Assembly (NCBI GenBank): GCA_002269645.1
Contig: NIVC01004826.1
Location: 1-34,101 of the forward strand
Direction: 5' to 3'
Origin: Macrostomum lignano
Taxonomy: Eukaryota
Length of the DNA stretch: 34,101 bases
Of this stretch, positions 13,401 through 18,502 are shown one piece after another. Each line of letters starts with the position of its first letter. Position 1 is the stretch's first letter. The notes beneath the pieces were generated by a model, which was not told the origin of the DNA, ran no database searches, and worked only from the letters and a program-made list of their open reading frames with translations. The position numbers and the translations under genes are program-made.

Positions 13401-16400
13401 ATAAGACACCCTTAGAAGAGATGAATAGCATACTTTAGACTGCCGTAGATATGGATGATGTTCTCTTGGACGTGGCTGACCGACCGGCAGTAATTGTGAT
13501 CGCTGAATCCGACGGAGTCCGGCATTTGCAGAAAAGTCCTGGATGCGTTCCAGACTAAAAGTTTATTCAAGGTTTCGGTTTATGATAAGAACATCAGAAT
13601 GCCGCACTAAGATTCGATTCAGCCAATAGAAGTACATGTACCGACCGAGTGAGGTTGAGACTTCTGGTCACAGTCTACAGGGCAGGCAGGTAAGTACGAC
13701 TATGTTTACTCTGCTCACCGACACTTACAGAGAGGAGTACATCTAGCATGCCTTATTCATAATCGTTATTATCAATGCTCTTAAAATTCTCCTAAAAAGA
13801 TGTCTCTCGTTAGCGAAAATCGAACAACCCCACAGGCCAATAATCGAAGCTATTGCTAGTCTCTTACCAACTTGCTTTTAAAAAAGGAAACGCCAACTGC
13901 TCATTCACATTGTCAACGAATGGGCCATCAAATCACACTAAAGAATCAAATTTGATGTACAAACTGTGTGATCACAGGAGTACTCTTGAGCCATTAGTTC
14001 ATGCTTTTAATTTTGATTTAATTGAAGGAGAGATGGGGTGGGTGAACTGATTGGTCACTGATTGGTCACCTGGGCAGAGAGTAAGATGTACATTGATTAC
14101 GCGTGGCGAGGGAAAGTTGAACTGACAATCAGATAAGATTATAAGCGAGTCAATAACCTAATAAGAAATTTTTAATTAGTTTAGTAAAATCATCAATTTT
14201 ATCAATTGGAAAAAATCTGCCGATGGAGTCGCTGAATGGTGTAATAGTGCCCGTTTAGACTTGTCATTGTGTCTTGGGTAAAAGTTCTTCACAATGTCGC
14301 TTAAAGTGTGCCAGGGTGCACACAGCCCCTGCCTCTAATATAAAAGTACAAAGGGAACGCTAAAATTCATTGCCATTCATCACTCTGCTGCTTACTGCTC
14401 ATATTTCTTGAGAAAGCTGCTTACCATAACCTTCGATCGTTCGACTAATATTTTGCAAGTTTCTCCAGTTCACGCAAGGCTTCCCAGTCACTGTGACGTT
14501 CCGGAAGCCGGTGTAGTGCGCCAGCTCGGTCTGGTCTGGCGCCACCTTTTCAGATTGGCTCGGGACGCAGTCGTGGTTCTCGTTGGCTCCTGTATGAATT
14601 TTTATTCGAAATTGTATAATATAACTCTATCGACAATAACTAGAAAACATGATAAAGGTAATCTTAACTTAACATGCTGCGTTAGTTAGTTAGTAATTTA
14701 GTTAGTTAGTTAGTTAGTTAGTAATTTAGTTAGTTAGTTATTAAGTTCGTTAGTTCGTTAGTTAGTTAGTTAGTTAGTTAGTTAGTTAGTTAGTAATTTA
14801 GTTAGTTAGTTCGTTAGTTAGTTAGTTCGTTAGTTAGTTAGTTAGTTAGATAGTTAGTTCGTTCGTTCGTTAGTTCGTTCGTTCGTTAGTTAGTTAGTTA
14901 GTTAGTTAGTTAGTCAGTTAGTTAGTTAGTTAGTTAGTAATTTAGTTAGTTAGTTAGTTAGTTAGTTAGTTAGTTAGTTAGTTAGTTAGTTCGTTAGTTC
15001 GTTAGTTCGTTAGTTCGTTAGTTAGTTAGTTAGTTAGTTCGTTAGTTAGTTAGTTAGTTAGTTAGTTAGTTAGTTAGTTAGTTAGTTAGTTAGTTAGTTA
15101 GTTAGTTAGTTAGTTAGTTAGTTAGTTAGTTAGTTAGTTAGTTCGTTAGTTCGTTAGTTCGTTAGTTAGTTCGTTAGTTCGTTAGTTAGTTAGTTAGTTA
15201 GTTAGTTAGTTAGTTAGTTAGTTAGTTAGTTAGTTAGTTATTTATTTAGTTAGTTAGTTAGTTGGCTCAGCTTGGCTTGGCCTGGCTTGGCTTGGCTTGG
15301 CTTGGCTCAAAGTTTGGCTTACGACTGGTGAGTGAGTTATTTATGAGCTGTTAAAACACTACTGTGTATCTGCAGGCACACGTCATAACAGTGCTTCACG
15401 GCAGCGTAAATTTACTTCAGTGAATTAAATTTGCTTTGTCGTGAAATCAAGTTATTGATCGAATTGGATCGCCAGTTTGTTTCAACACTAATTACCTTCC
15501 CAGCTTGCATTTCAAGTTTCCTGAATGACCATACTAGATGTAGCTCGAATATGCATGTAGATAAAAATAAAACTGCGTTACCACAGAACGGAACGCCGCA
15601 GTAGTAGGCGCTGAGCTGGGTGCTGTCAAAGTAGAAGCAGTAAGGACCCTGCATCGAATTTGTGAGGCTGTTGCCAAGCGGAATGCGCATCGGCCTCGAG
15701 TCTGGAATTATGTGCTTACTATTATCAAAAGTGGATTAATTAGGCGCGATTTTATCTTAATGATCAATTGCTTGCCGGGCCTGATCTCAGTCGGGTTTAG
15801 CAAGGTGCTGGAGGGACTGAGAGTTGACAAACTTTGATTTTTGAAGCTGATATTCCTAGCCTGCAAACAAGTATCGCTTTTTGCAGTCAATTTTCCACTC
15901 TGGGCTTGGTGGACACAGAGACTCTGTGGCTTCGCCTAGTCAAAGTAGTCTATGGCCCAAGCCAAAATGGCTAGAAGGTGCAATCAGTTTTCCACTCGTA
16001 TTTAAACCAGGATATCTTGGCAAGACCTACAGTGTATTGTGTCTCCCCGTTCGTGAGAATGAATGATGAGCTGCCGCGTTTCATCGCTAATTTTAGTATT
16101 TTGGCCTTGTGGAGGTTAAATCTCCGCCGTCAGAGAGCAGACAACGCGTCAGTCAATCAAGTCGTCAAAAGAAAAGGGCTGTTTGTGGTCTTACGAGACC
16201 ACAAGCTCGCACTTAAGTTTAGACCTGATCAAAGCCTCTCAGAAAAGCTTCGGCACTGAATGGTCTCAGTATAGCTTGGCCATAGACAAAATTCCGCTGC
16301 CTTTTCCACGGAGTCTTCTGCTTACAGGGTGTGGAAAATTTTTGCCTCAGTTGGAAAACTGATCGCGCCTTCTAGCCACTTTGGTTTGGGCCATAGACTA

Positions 16401-18502
16401 CTTTGACTAGGCGAAGCCACAGAGTCTCTGTGTCCACCCTTGAAAGCCCCGAGTGGAAAATTGAGGGTCACTCGTACTCGATAGATTTGATTGCAGCCGA
16501 GAATTAGAATATGGAAAGCAAAAGTTTCTGGCAGTTATTATTATTTACTAGATAACTTGTTATAGTGTATTAAAAAAATAATTAAGGTACCTACCGTCGA
16601 AATCGATCTGCAAGAGACTCAGCGACAGGAGATCGTTGCTGCCGCAGACTCGGTTTTCTCCGTTGCACGTGGCGTCACAGTTAGAGGCGCTGCCAAACAT
16701 CTTCATGTTTTCACCGTCGCTCTTTGTGATGCAGTAGCAATCTGGGCTGGTCAGGCCCATGTAGACATAACCCTTTCCGTAGCAGCATTCTCTGCACATC
16801 TGGCTCGTCATGCCAGCAAAGTCATTTATGGCACATTTATAGGGTGCCGAAGCTACCGCTTTGAAATAGCAGCCAAGCTCGATTTGCAGCGGACCTAGAG
16901 AACAAATGCCGATCATATTTTTAAGTTCAATCAAGCAGGCAATACATTTTTCAGAGGAATAGTGCCTTCTCTTTCTGAGCATTCTCAATGCTCAGTGCTC
17001 AGACTCTGTGTCTTTGGATCGGCCCTCGTGGGGGCAGACCGAATTTGTCTCATGGTTCTAAAGTCGATTCTTTAGAATCGGTGCAACGACCCCTTTTTAG
17101 AGCCGGTTTTCAACCCAAAATGCACTAGTGAGATACCGGATACCAGGGAAGAATTTCCGTAAAATGGAATATATTGAACTGGCTAAAGATTCACCACCGA
17201 CTCTTACCAAACCACCCACTCACGCAAGGTGACCTGCGAGGCACATTCTGTGCCATAAAACTGGCTCTAGGAACCGAATTTGAGCAGACTCGCTACTCAC
17301 GTTTCACGTTTCACGATCAGCTTCTTGCTCAAGCCAGAAATGTATAAATATCCCCAAATTCCTGTTAAAGTTTGAATTGCGGTTTAACTTACGATACGAC
17401 CCATTCCACCACTGAGTGAGAGGGACACCCGGGGGAGCTCTGCACTTGTTGTCACTCTCTGACAGGTTTAACGCCAGAATCTGGCCGGCTTGATGGGACA
17501 GCGTGGTGTTTAGCAACAGTCGCGCAGCTCGGTTCCACTCGGTGCAGTTCTGGTAGCTCAGGTACGGCAAGGTGCTGAAGAAGCTGACGTTCGATACGAC
17601 TTTTTCTTCTCCAATGCGTTGGTAGATGGGCACAACTGAGAGGCTGCCATTGTACTCCTCACCAGCTTGGGTGATGCGACACTCGAATTGCTGTCTGCAA
17701 CGGCGTTCGGGTACGACTCCTGAATTGATAAGACCAATCAGCTTAGGTTGGGCGTGTGCAGAGCAAATTTAAATGCAGAACATTTTACTGTAGCTTCAAC
17801 CTTTAAATAGCCTAGCTAAATGTTTACTGTCACAAGCTCGTGATAAAAAGTCTTAGTAACTTTGATGCTCTGACAAGAACTAAGCAATGCTTCTAAGTTC
17901 TGAGCATTCTAGGGTTCTCCAAGAAAAAGCACTTAGTAGTCGCAGAGCTCACGGTTAACAGCCTGTCGGTATTCTTTCATCAGCGATTGCTCCGTCCCGG
18001 AAATCACGTGAAACAGCGCCAGAATCTCCGGAGTCAGTCGCAACTCAGACGGGTGGGCGCCACTTACTTTTTTCTCCATGTCAAAGGCGAAGCTGTTCGA
18101 CCAGCAGCAGTCAACTTGGGAGTTAGTTAAATACGTAGGCGAGATCCTCTCCACCATGGTGCTCATGGTGATCGCTCTGTGCGGGCACAGGTACACATCC
18201 GGAAACTCGAACGGAAGCGAGGTCGCAATGGACGTGAGCACCGGTGCGCCCATGAACCGGTCGAACAGGCTGTACAGGTGGTACGTGAAGCCGCCGTAGG
18301 TGCCCAGCAGGAAGGTAAGCCAGATGACGCGACCCAAGGTGCCCGACTGGGAAGAGAACCGGCCGAGTCCGTGAGCGGAGGTGTAGCCGCAGAAGTCGGA
18401 CACGAACTGAGTGACTTTCTGGGGCGGTGAATTTTCTTGTTGTTTGTCTTGCTTCTTCTCATCAGCCTGAAGGCCTTCCTCGGTCTGTCGCTCAGAAGCC
18501 AT
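10472..18502 (-). CDS. Large DEG/ENaC (ASIC/FaNaC-family) channel subunit with kringle-WSC-kringle insertion, 13 coding exons, about 1082 aa
   Basis: Exons: 18502-17953, 17719-17393, 17361-17301, 17266-17208, 16894-16595, 15701-15582, 14589-14425, 13554-13434, 13330-13224, 13012-12651, 12026-11827, 11573-10961, 10734-10472. All introns are GT-AG and phase-compatible; one +1 nt is needed at 11123-11125. Family motifs: FCGYTSAHGL (HG), TM1, FPDVYLC, ECSFGGQKC...GLCHRF, thumb cysteines CNC...C...C...C...C then WP, and ADIGGALGLWSGVSVLTVCELVEL (G-V-S filter). Exons 3-4 are the least certain. Confidence 0.88.
13225..14569 (-). other. Kringle-like domain 2 (exons 7-9 of the channel gene)
   Basis: DC...HYTGFRNVTVTGKPCVNW...DHNYCR...TPGCYVY...RTCSIPMC. 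All six kringle cysteines are present with the Y-x-G-x-x-x-x-T-x-x-G-x-x-C-x-x-W, NYCR, PxCY and CxIPxC motifs. Confidence 0.85.
14681..15263. repeat. (GTTA)n/(GTTC)n microsatellite in intron 6
   Basis: About 580 bp of GTTA with interspersed GTTC and a few GTAATTTA interruptions. Confidence 0.98.
15270..15306. repeat. (CTTGG)n pentanucleotide repeat adjoining the GTTA tract
   Basis: cttggcttggcctggcttggcttggcttggcttggct. Confidence 0.9.
15887..16464. mobile_element. MITE-like foldback element with TIRs of about 110 bp in intron 5
   Basis: 15887-16000 (tcaattttccactc...ggacacagagactctgtggcttcgcctagtcaaagtagtctatggcccaa...ctagaagg) is the reverse complement of about 16350-16464. No TSD identified, no ORF. 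Confidence 0.8.
16595..16894 (-). other. WSC domain encoded by one phase 1-1 exon (exon 5)
   Basis: LGCYF...MTSQMCRECCYGKGYVYMGLTSPDCYC...NCDATCNGENRVCGSNDLLS matches the WSC pattern GCY...MT...C...C...GY.Y.G....C.C...C...C.G....CG. Confidence 0.88.

Follow-up and report, generated by a model that had tools for sequence, protein, structure and literature searches.

We analyzed a stretch of 34,101 nucleotides (nt) of Macrostomum lignano DNA (assembly GCA_002269645.1, contig NIVC01004826.1, positions 1 to 34,101; hereafter, the window), for which an earlier note, made from the sequence alone, had proposed that a WSC domain lies nested inside a kringle rather than next to it. The kringle and WSC exons belong to a 12-exon gene on the minus strand that has one open reading frame (ORF) of 1022 amino acids (aa), and the region in question consists of exons 2-4 of this gene, which encodes a member of the DEG/ENaC (amiloride-sensitive sodium channel) family. 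The earlier note was silent on the channel host, and the presence of the module inside a DEG/ENaC gene is, in our judgment, the more surprising part of the finding.

The channel gene and its kringle/WSC cassette

The gene model was built ab initio from open frames and GT-AG splice sites, and residue numbers throughout refer to the 1022-aa model. The exons are as follows:

17953-18502, minus strand: exon 1, with the ATG at 18502, the cytoplasmic N-terminus, the HG motif (SAHGL, 18379-18365), the first transmembrane helix (TM1, 18328-18263) and the start of the DEG/ENaC extracellular domain; phase-1 end, donor GTGAGC
17393-17719, minus strand: exon 2, 327 nt, phase 1-1; N part of kringle 1 (K1), with cysteine C1, GEEYNG, an insert of ~23 aa, C2-x-x-W (QNCTEW), C3 (NKCRAPPG) and 16 residues of the C3-C4 loop
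16595-16894, minus strand: exon 3, 300 nt, phase 1-1; complete WSC domain with ten cysteines
15582-15701, minus strand: exon 4, 120 nt, phase 1-1; ~21 aa of linker followed by the C part of K1 with GPYC (C4), YYC (C5) and GVPFC (C6, 15585-15583)
14425-14589, minus strand: exon 5, phase 1-1; kringle 2 (K2)
13434-13554, minus strand: exon 6, phase 1-2; K2
13224-13330, minus strand: exon 7, phase 2-1; K2
13012-12651, 12026-11827, 11573-11129, 11072-10961 and 10734-10475, minus strand: exons 8-12, the remaining DEG/ENaC domain with C-x-F-x-G-x-x-C, the cysteine-rich domain, the pre-TM2 motif ADIGG, TM2 with G-V-S (SGVS), the C-terminus and the stop

Every junction from exon 1 through exon 5 is in phase 1, and exons 2, 3, 4 and 5 as well as the pair 6+7 are each a multiple of three in length, with phase-1 introns at both ends. 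Exons 2-7 form a kringle(WSC)-kringle cassette of 1140 nt (380 codons), itself of phase 1-1, that lacks its own start codon, signal peptide and stop. Intron 3, between the WSC exon and the exon with the C half of K1, carries an 87-nt inverted repeat (arms at 15908-15994 and 16352-16438, 95% complementary and 357 nt apart) that is non-coding and resembles a miniature inverted-repeat transposable element or a foldback element; the intron between K1 and K2 contains a (GTTA)n microsatellite (14681-15263, ~146 copies) followed by (TTGGC)n (15262-15307).

The full model matches the Pfam ASC family (PF00858) with an E value of 2e-43 and 149.5 bits, against a gathering threshold of 23.6, and combines the ASC domain with two transmembrane helices, the HG motif and G-x-S in TM2, the features expected of DEG/ENaC channels. 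The PDB matches of the channel part are FaNaC, ASIC5, ENaC gamma, PPK26 and ASIC1. Exon 1 aligns with residues 56-151 of FaNaC (7YVB) and 30-113 of ASIC5; in the FaNaC alignment, model residues 22-115 correspond to 56-151 and model residues 576-624 to 190-236. Because this alignment breaks between FaNaC residues ~151 and ~190, the cassette is shown, at the level of sequence alignment, to map to the finger, a variable region within the extracellular domain. The finger is the most variable part of the DEG/ENaC family, as seen in the structures of ASIC, ENaC and FaNaC. Three M. lignano DEG/ENaC genes that branch near the FaNaCs were expressed in one study and gave no peptide response. A literature search found no description of a DEG/ENaC channel with kringle or WSC domains, nor any of a kringle hosting another domain.

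Kringle 1, the WSC domain and kringle 2

The six cysteines attributed to K1 are distributed over exons 2 and 4:

17681-17679, minus strand: C1 (C197), exon 2
17546-17544, minus strand: C2 (C242), exon 2
17444-17442, minus strand: C3 (C276), exon 2
15639-15637, minus strand: C4 (C414), exon 4
15600-15598, minus strand: C5 (C427), exon 4
15585-15583, minus strand: C6 (C432), exon 4

The limits of the nested arrangement given in the earlier note, 15583-17681, are exact: the C1 codon begins at 17681 and the C6 codon ends at 15583. Its assignment of C1-C3 to exon 2 is correct, whereas C4-C6, placed there in exon 6, are in exon 4, and the WSC domain, drawn as exons 3-5, is encoded by one 300-nt exon (16894-16595), as it is in the related M. 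lignano locus L001 described below. The whole WSC domain is indeed located between C3 and C4. The 137 residues from C3 to C4 comprise 24 residues, the WSC domain (C301-C376) and 37 residues past the last WSC cysteine, of which ~21-25 are linker, so that the proposed linker of about 40 aa was somewhat high. Owing to the WSC insert, K1 spans 236 residues (C197-C432) and is not a contiguous module of ~80 residues.

K1 contains, besides its six ordered cysteines, the motifs GEEYNG, CTEW, CRAPPG, GPYC and CGVPFC, and this pattern is invariant across the full-length paralogs. The alignment suggested in the earlier note, with the WSC domain removed, was carried out with hhalign against a profile of nine kringles of the ostracod Darwinula and gave a probability of 98% and an E value of 2.9e-13 (query 8-118, template 1-89), running from C1 to C6 and containing 23 inserted residues behind Y-x-G. 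Because the junction left by the removal of the WSC domain was made by hand, the uncut segment was compared with the kringle profile as well, and yielded colinear local matches: the N half of K1 at 8-23 on 1-16 and at 48-90 on 18-62, the C half at 217-240 on 67-89 (90%), and K2 at 264-326 on 9-61 (96%). For the N half taken by itself the score is 23.0, whereas 100 column shuffles gave 10.2 +/- 2.3 (maximum 16.2), and the score of the full K1 alignment, 72.6, exceeds that of the C half alone (41.0; E 1.2e-9). A PDB search with a five-sequence alignment of K1 minus WSC returned 63 matches, 63/63 of them kringle proteins; the best was an HGF construct (3e-5), with single HGF K1 chains at ~1e-3. 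The HGF K1 alignment crosses the C3/C4 junction (seskCRsPpGlPlGPyCff...CdvPfC versus ENYCRNPRGEEGGPWCF...CDIPQC), and on tPA K2 and ROR1 the match reaches from C2 to C6. Unsupervised alignment with MAFFT placed the Darwinula kringle N halves on C1, Y-x-G and C2-x-W; with a large number of WSC rows in the input, MAFFT set full kringle N halves onto the WSC domain, and that alignment was left unused, while with truncated kringle N fragments the alignment was correct. Both K1 and K2 of the window fall short of the Pfam Kringle gathering threshold of 34.3 bits, and the case for the homology of K1 is carried by the family, single-sequence evidence being absent. An extra exon completing K1 ahead of the WSC domain, an outcome that the earlier note had named as contradicting the nesting, was rejected because the L001 WSC exon is flanked by introns of just 82 and 176 nt and the introns of the window contain no kringle-like motif in any frame.

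The WSC exon taken alone matches Pfam WSC with 28.3 bits (gathering threshold 27.8; E 2e-6; profile positions 2-81 of 82), whereas only 21.8 bits are reached when the domain is scored inside the full protein. Eight of its ten cysteines are Kremen-like in spacing, and the extra pair, C313 and C329, is conserved in the family. Searched against the PDB with phmmer, the window's WSC exon alone gave no match; the WSC family profile matches only WSC-containing chains, including Kremen1 (2.9e-10), Wsc1 (2.5e-9) and chain 9N3U (1.7e-6; named Fusarium glyoxal oxidase in Foldseek).

K2 has six cysteines, and every loop is enlarged. Its C3-C4 loop, which the earlier note put at about 30 aa, indeed has 31 residues from C3 (C510) to C4 (C542), with a C3-to-C4 offset of 30-35 in all paralogs; an intron lies inside this loop, in phase 2 and 4 nt out of register. 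K2 scores 18.1 bits with Pfam Kringle (E 0.0034), below the gathering threshold, and 97% with hhalign over Y.G..C.W; the PDB matches of its family profile are exclusively kringle proteins (tPA K2, 7e-4). The acidic lysine-site pair (CRNPD-x-D/E after C3) is missing from both kringles, the corresponding sequences being CRAPPGVPL in K1 and CRSVSHVQE in K2 (family consensus CR.PPGLPL and CR.(V/A)..V, respectively). The reported loss of the RNPD-x-D/E motif, replaced by CRAPPG and CRSVSH, is thus borne out, and to judge from these residues the module has no plasminogen-type lysine site.

The kringle of Kremen1 has the disulfides C1-C6, C2-C4 and C3-C5 (PMC5014086). Each canonical kringle disulfide joins a cysteine of the N half to one of the C half, and therefore the two halves of K1 would have to bond across the insert. 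Among the M. lignano database paralogs, the K1 N half, the WSC domain and the K1 C half contain 3 + 10 + 3 cysteines; a further cysteine, C191, lies upstream in the copy of the window. From this pattern we infer that the cysteines of the two halves can all be paired only across the WSC insert. Under this scheme, the two kringle halves would clamp together, and the WSC domain would stand out from the loop as one compact body. The segment from the K1 N half through the WSC domain to the K1 C half of paralog P0001 was modeled with AlphaFold2 (AF2) from an alignment of 72 rows (9 family, 45 WSC, and the N fragments and C halves of kringles entered as rows of their own), in which no row bridged the insert. 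The predicted local distance difference test score (pLDDT) is 84.4 and the predicted template modeling score (pTM) is 0.74, with local pLDDT values of 89 for residues 11-20, 89-97 for residues 51-100, 81-94 for the WSC domain and 90-91 for the K1 C half; the extra loop, residues 29-50, is poorly defined. In a Foldseek search with this model, Wsc1 was matched with an E value of 3.8e-6 (TM-score 0.68-0.74 on the target) and Kremen1 with 7.5e-6.

Profile-level homology, gene structure and cysteine parity agree in supporting the nesting of the WSC domain as originally proposed. At the level of sequence homology, exons 2 and 4 thus encode two parts of one divergent kringle that holds the WSC domain in its C3-C4 loop.

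Paralogs, alternative explanations and the state of this copy

At least seven M. lignano paralogs, 29-49% identical to one another, share the order TM1, K1 N half, WSC, K1 C half, K2 and ASC, and the M. lignano paralogs retain every cysteine. The nearest proteins are M. lignano proteins of ~1050 aa that cover 91-95% of the model at 34-37% BLASTP identity. Several paralogs are BOX15_Mlig models with the identical fused order. The BOX15_Mlig models come from a genome-guided, RNA-seq-based annotation (PMC5730564), which speaks for a cassette that belongs to the channel mRNA and against a nested gene. The search for the same nesting in relatives, proposed in the earlier note, thus found it in this set of paralogs and yielded no full-span match outside the species: in an exhaustive HMMER search of 1.84 billion representatives with a profile from the K1 N half through WSC and the K1 C half to K2, full-span matches were confined to M. 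lignano, and the remaining matches were multi-WSC proteins or multi-kringle proteins of Darwinula. A further protein search with a 10-sequence alignment gave three matches, all already known. Two database variants differ within the cassette: P0006 is the same paralog as P0001 minus the last K2 exon (…HGPKDF-H-VTATIRD…), and P0004 has no linker ahead of GPYC, differences that reflect either alternative splicing or differences in prediction.

The gene structure can be compared with that of L001, the M. lignano locus of P0001, which has the same single WSC exon. The L001 junctions, read by eye from tblastn at a locus that differs slightly from the P0001 protein, match those of the window in codon and phase: a split Arg codon in phase 1 between the K1 N half and WSC, phase 1 between WSC and the K1 C half, phase 1 between the K1 C half and K2, and, inside K2, phase 1 and then phase 2. 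Intron positions and phases are thus conserved between the window and L001 at a protein identity of only 37-40%. The window and L001, an unrelated M. lignano contig, also share non-coding similarity, the window segments 3902-4233 and 14292-14344 resembling L001 10776-11143 (73% over 380 nt and 87% over 55 nt), which presumably represents a dispersed repeat family.

The best explanation for these observations, and one that we consider probable, is a WSC exon nested in a divergent kringle within a cassette of the DEG/ENaC finger. Several results weigh against it. The individual matches of the K1 N half are weak (hhalign E values of 0.008 and 0.02); Pfam Kringle gives no match at E<=1 for the window's own K1 minus WSC and detects 3/5 of the family constructs, with a best E value of 1.3e-4. 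The AF2 target was a paralog and not the protein of the window, the confident run used an alignment enriched with WSC and separate half-kringle rows, the natural four-sequence alignment led to a pLDDT of 50, and the C2-C3 stretch was modeled as two confident helices, unlike canonical kringles. Foldseek with the paralog model returned no isolated kringle chain, which lends no support, although we regard this null as neutral because a sequential aligner cannot bridge an insert of ~125 residues. Finally, exon 10 has a frame discontinuity near 11109-11125 (minus strand), and the function of the module is a matter of pure inference.

The alternative that survives best is compatible with the nesting: the architecture would be real in the family, and the window's copy would be a decaying pseudogene, which we view as a minority possibility. 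At the discontinuity in exon 10, the conserved NMSSSDLLKFDYQLQ (aligned with NRSTEAIQSFESELAAL of P0001) is out of frame with the preceding ...SAKSVENVPATT*; the frame ending in ...SAKSVENVPATT stops at a TGA, and the family-conserved NMSSSDLLKFDYQLQAIKNRLAKL runs on in the other frame. In the model, the break is bridged by a 56-nt GT-AG intron (11128-11073) that skips conserved residues; an indel of 1 nt, whether it is a true mutation or was introduced by the PacBio-based assembly, is no less likely. Decay would also fit with the finding of no protein matching the window's channel gene in the collections searched, with a diverged partial copy of exon 1 at 5205-5604, and with the failure of Pfam to recognize K1, the weak kringle signal then reflecting lost constraint. 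All the other exons, however, are open and have canonical splice sites; 22/22 family-conserved cysteines of K1, WSC and K2 are kept, as are the HG motif, ADIGG and TM2; the frame is open past the shift, as expected of a single indel error in a PacBio-based assembly (PMC5730564); and the 56-nt intron can also bridge the break. The kringle/WSC exons are unaffected by the frame break in any case. The copy at 5205-5604 (minus strand) is a partial duplicate of 18216-18647, the channel gene's upstream region plus exon 1, with 81.7% identity over 436 nt, in which TM1 is shortened and GGFTYHLY is missing; no kringle, WSC or ASC exons were seen downstream of it, and it is probably a gene fragment.

It is also conceivable, but improbable, that the pieces are kringle-derived without forming one kringle, being remnants, for example of two ancestral kringles, with another cysteine pairing, such as with the two extra WSC cysteines or between subunits. 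The missing Pfam match of the window's K1, the weak local matches of the N half, the two confident helices between C2 and C3, the WSC domain's two extra conserved cysteines and the lack of a kringle chain among the Foldseek matches could all be read in this way. By contrast, the end-to-end alignment from C1 to C6 (98%) outscores the C half alone (72.6 versus 41.0), the 3 + 3 cysteines do not vary, the additional pair in the WSC domain constitutes an even set by itself, and the pLDDT of 90-91 for the K1 C half together with the pTM of 0.74 for the whole model implies defined packing. That the kringle/WSC exons are a separate gene in a channel intron, or were misjoined, is hardly credible, for although the gene model is ab initio and automatic Pfam-based names ('WSC domain-containing protein') show that these genes are uncurated, all junctions join compatible phases (phase 1) at GT-AG sites, the cassette by itself lacks a start, a signal peptide and a stop, the fused order recurs in independent paralogs, the RNA-seq-guided BOX15_Mlig models included, and intron positions and phases are conserved at 37-40% identity, with the short introns (82 and 176 nt) on both sides of the WSC exon in L001.

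Elsewhere in the window, the following features were observed; a tRNA scan of the window with ARAGORN was negative.

180-506, plus strand: ORF with the DEG/ENaC pre-TM2/TM2 motif FLADIGGLLGLYIGCSLLTLCELLELAYHLV, by its sequence the 3' end of another channel gene, with its upstream exons outside the window
463-1305: imperfect short-period tandem repeat, open on the minus strand, with SPSPL, VTQS and HCHPV repeats
18926-19378: imperfect short-period tandem repeat, open on the minus strand, with TRHQTPD repeats, ~0.4-0.9 kb upstream of the channel start codon
20408-27026, minus strand: coding region of a BEL/Pao-type long terminal repeat (LTR) retrotransposon, with frames split into several ORFs
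26242-26694, minus strand: Pfam DUF1759 of the retrotransposon
24462-24932: CCHC zinc-knuckle-like ORF in the retrotransposon region
22119-23990, minus strand: Pfam Peptidase_A17 and RVT_1 of the retrotransposon
21376-22038, minus strand: Pfam Integrase_H2C2 of the retrotransposon
20408-21358, minus strand: Pfam rve and DUF5641 of the retrotransposon
27879-29334, minus strand: a tandem pair of near-identical exons (27879-28334 and 28344-28820) encoding fibrinogen C-terminal domains (Pfam Fibrinogen_C, 1.3e-31); the M. lignano UniRef protein P0165 maps to this region at 98-100% identity, which identifies the window as M. lignano and led to the rejection of another Macrostomum species as its source
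31390-32131, minus strand: exons encoding an EF-hand protein (DKDGYVDYSEYL; EF-hand_1 in Pfam with an E value of 1.3e-5, slightly under the gathering score)

Possible origin and role, and comparison with known systems

The nested arrangement probably originated by exon shuffling, in one of two ways: a class 1-1 WSC exon may have entered a phase-1 intron of the kringle loop, or an ancestral KR-WSC-KR (KR, kringle) arrangement may have lost two half-kringle exons. Exons with symmetrical phases 1-1 are a signature of class 1-1 module shuffling (PMC8001218), and the intron in the enlarged C3-C4 loop of K2, which bears on the origin, is suggestive but not conclusive. Domain insertion is common, with ~20% of multidomain proteins according to a statement in PMC13114784. 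The phenomena encountered here are of known kinds, namely, domain insertion and elaboration of the DEG/ENaC finger, and full-span matches were found only in M. lignano.

With respect to function, the Kremen kringle and WSC domains jointly bind DKK (PMC5014086), and WSC domains are described as carbohydrate or cell-wall sensors (title of PDB 7PZ2; PMC9024836). By analogy with these cases, the cassette would most likely be a glycan-, matrix- or protein-binding appendage on the finger, a tether or ligand sensor that influences gating. The more specific proposal that it is a functional sensor, which binds a glycan, the matrix or a protein and passes binding or tension to the gate, is tentative. 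Exon 3 is symmetrical and 300 nt long, and its skipping would leave an in-frame, uninterrupted kringle, so that alternative splicing could toggle the WSC domain.

A kringle is a small module of ~80 residues in which each of the three disulfides ties the two halves together, and the present case suggests that its C3-C4 loop can carry a whole folded domain; the gene structure, a class 1-1 exon within a phase-1 intron, preserves the route of construction. The cassette would also be a natural example of autonomous binding domains on the finger, a region tied to ligand and protease sensing in related channels. RNA interference is possible in M. lignano, a tractable animal in which the contribution of extracellular attachments to DEG/ENaC gating can be put to a direct test. 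Transgenesis is established in this species (PMC5730564).

Among the known systems, Kremen1/2 (PDB 5FWS; PMC5014086) similarly combine a kringle and a WSC domain in one extracellular disulfide-rich unit; Kremen1 is the best solved relative of the WSC domain of the family (2.9e-10; Foldseek 7.5e-6), and the eight canonical WSC cysteines follow one spacing in both (25, 4, 15-16, 2, 17-18, 4, 7-8). In Kremen, however, the domains are sequential, as the earlier note had stated, in the order KR-WSC-CUB, with kringle C6 at position 114 and WSC C1 at 122, whereas here the WSC domain lies between C3 and C4 of the kringle and bears a fifth cysteine pair. Kremen contains a CUB domain, in contrast to the gene in the window, where Pfam found none, and is a single-pass receptor as opposed to an ion channel with two transmembrane helices; its kringle is only a weak sequence match to K1 (E 0.71). 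Membership in the Kremen family was therefore rejected on account of the missing CUB domain, the nested order and the two-helix host.

With the canonical kringles of HGF, plasminogen, tPA, prothrombin and ROR1/2 (PF00051), K1 shares the six ordered cysteines, the motifs C-x-x-x-x-G-x-x-Y-x-G, C-x-x-W, x-C-R-x-P, G-P-[WY]-C and C-x-[VI]-P-x-C, and the C4-C5 (13-15) and C5-C6 (5) offsets. It differs in the C1-C2 offset (42-52 versus ~21-23), in the C2-C3 offset (33-37, predicted helical, versus ~29) and, owing to the WSC domain, in the C3-C4 offset (~138 in the window versus ~11), as well as in the absence of the acidic lysine-binding residues and in scores below the Pfam gathering score. The channel itself resembles FaNaC, ENaC and the degenerins in its two transmembrane helices, HG motif, pre-TM2 ADIGG, G-x-S in TM2, cysteine-rich domain and the presence of extra finger sequence, but here the 380 extra residues are mobile modules (kringle, WSC, kringle) encoded by phase 1-1 exons. 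Finally, yeast Wsc1 (PDB 7PZ2; PMC9024836) is the best Foldseek match of the inserted domain and is matched by the WSC family profile as well (2.5e-9); Wsc1 is a fungal single-pass sensor of cell-wall stress, and its likeness to the domain in the M. lignano channel is one of fold and profile.

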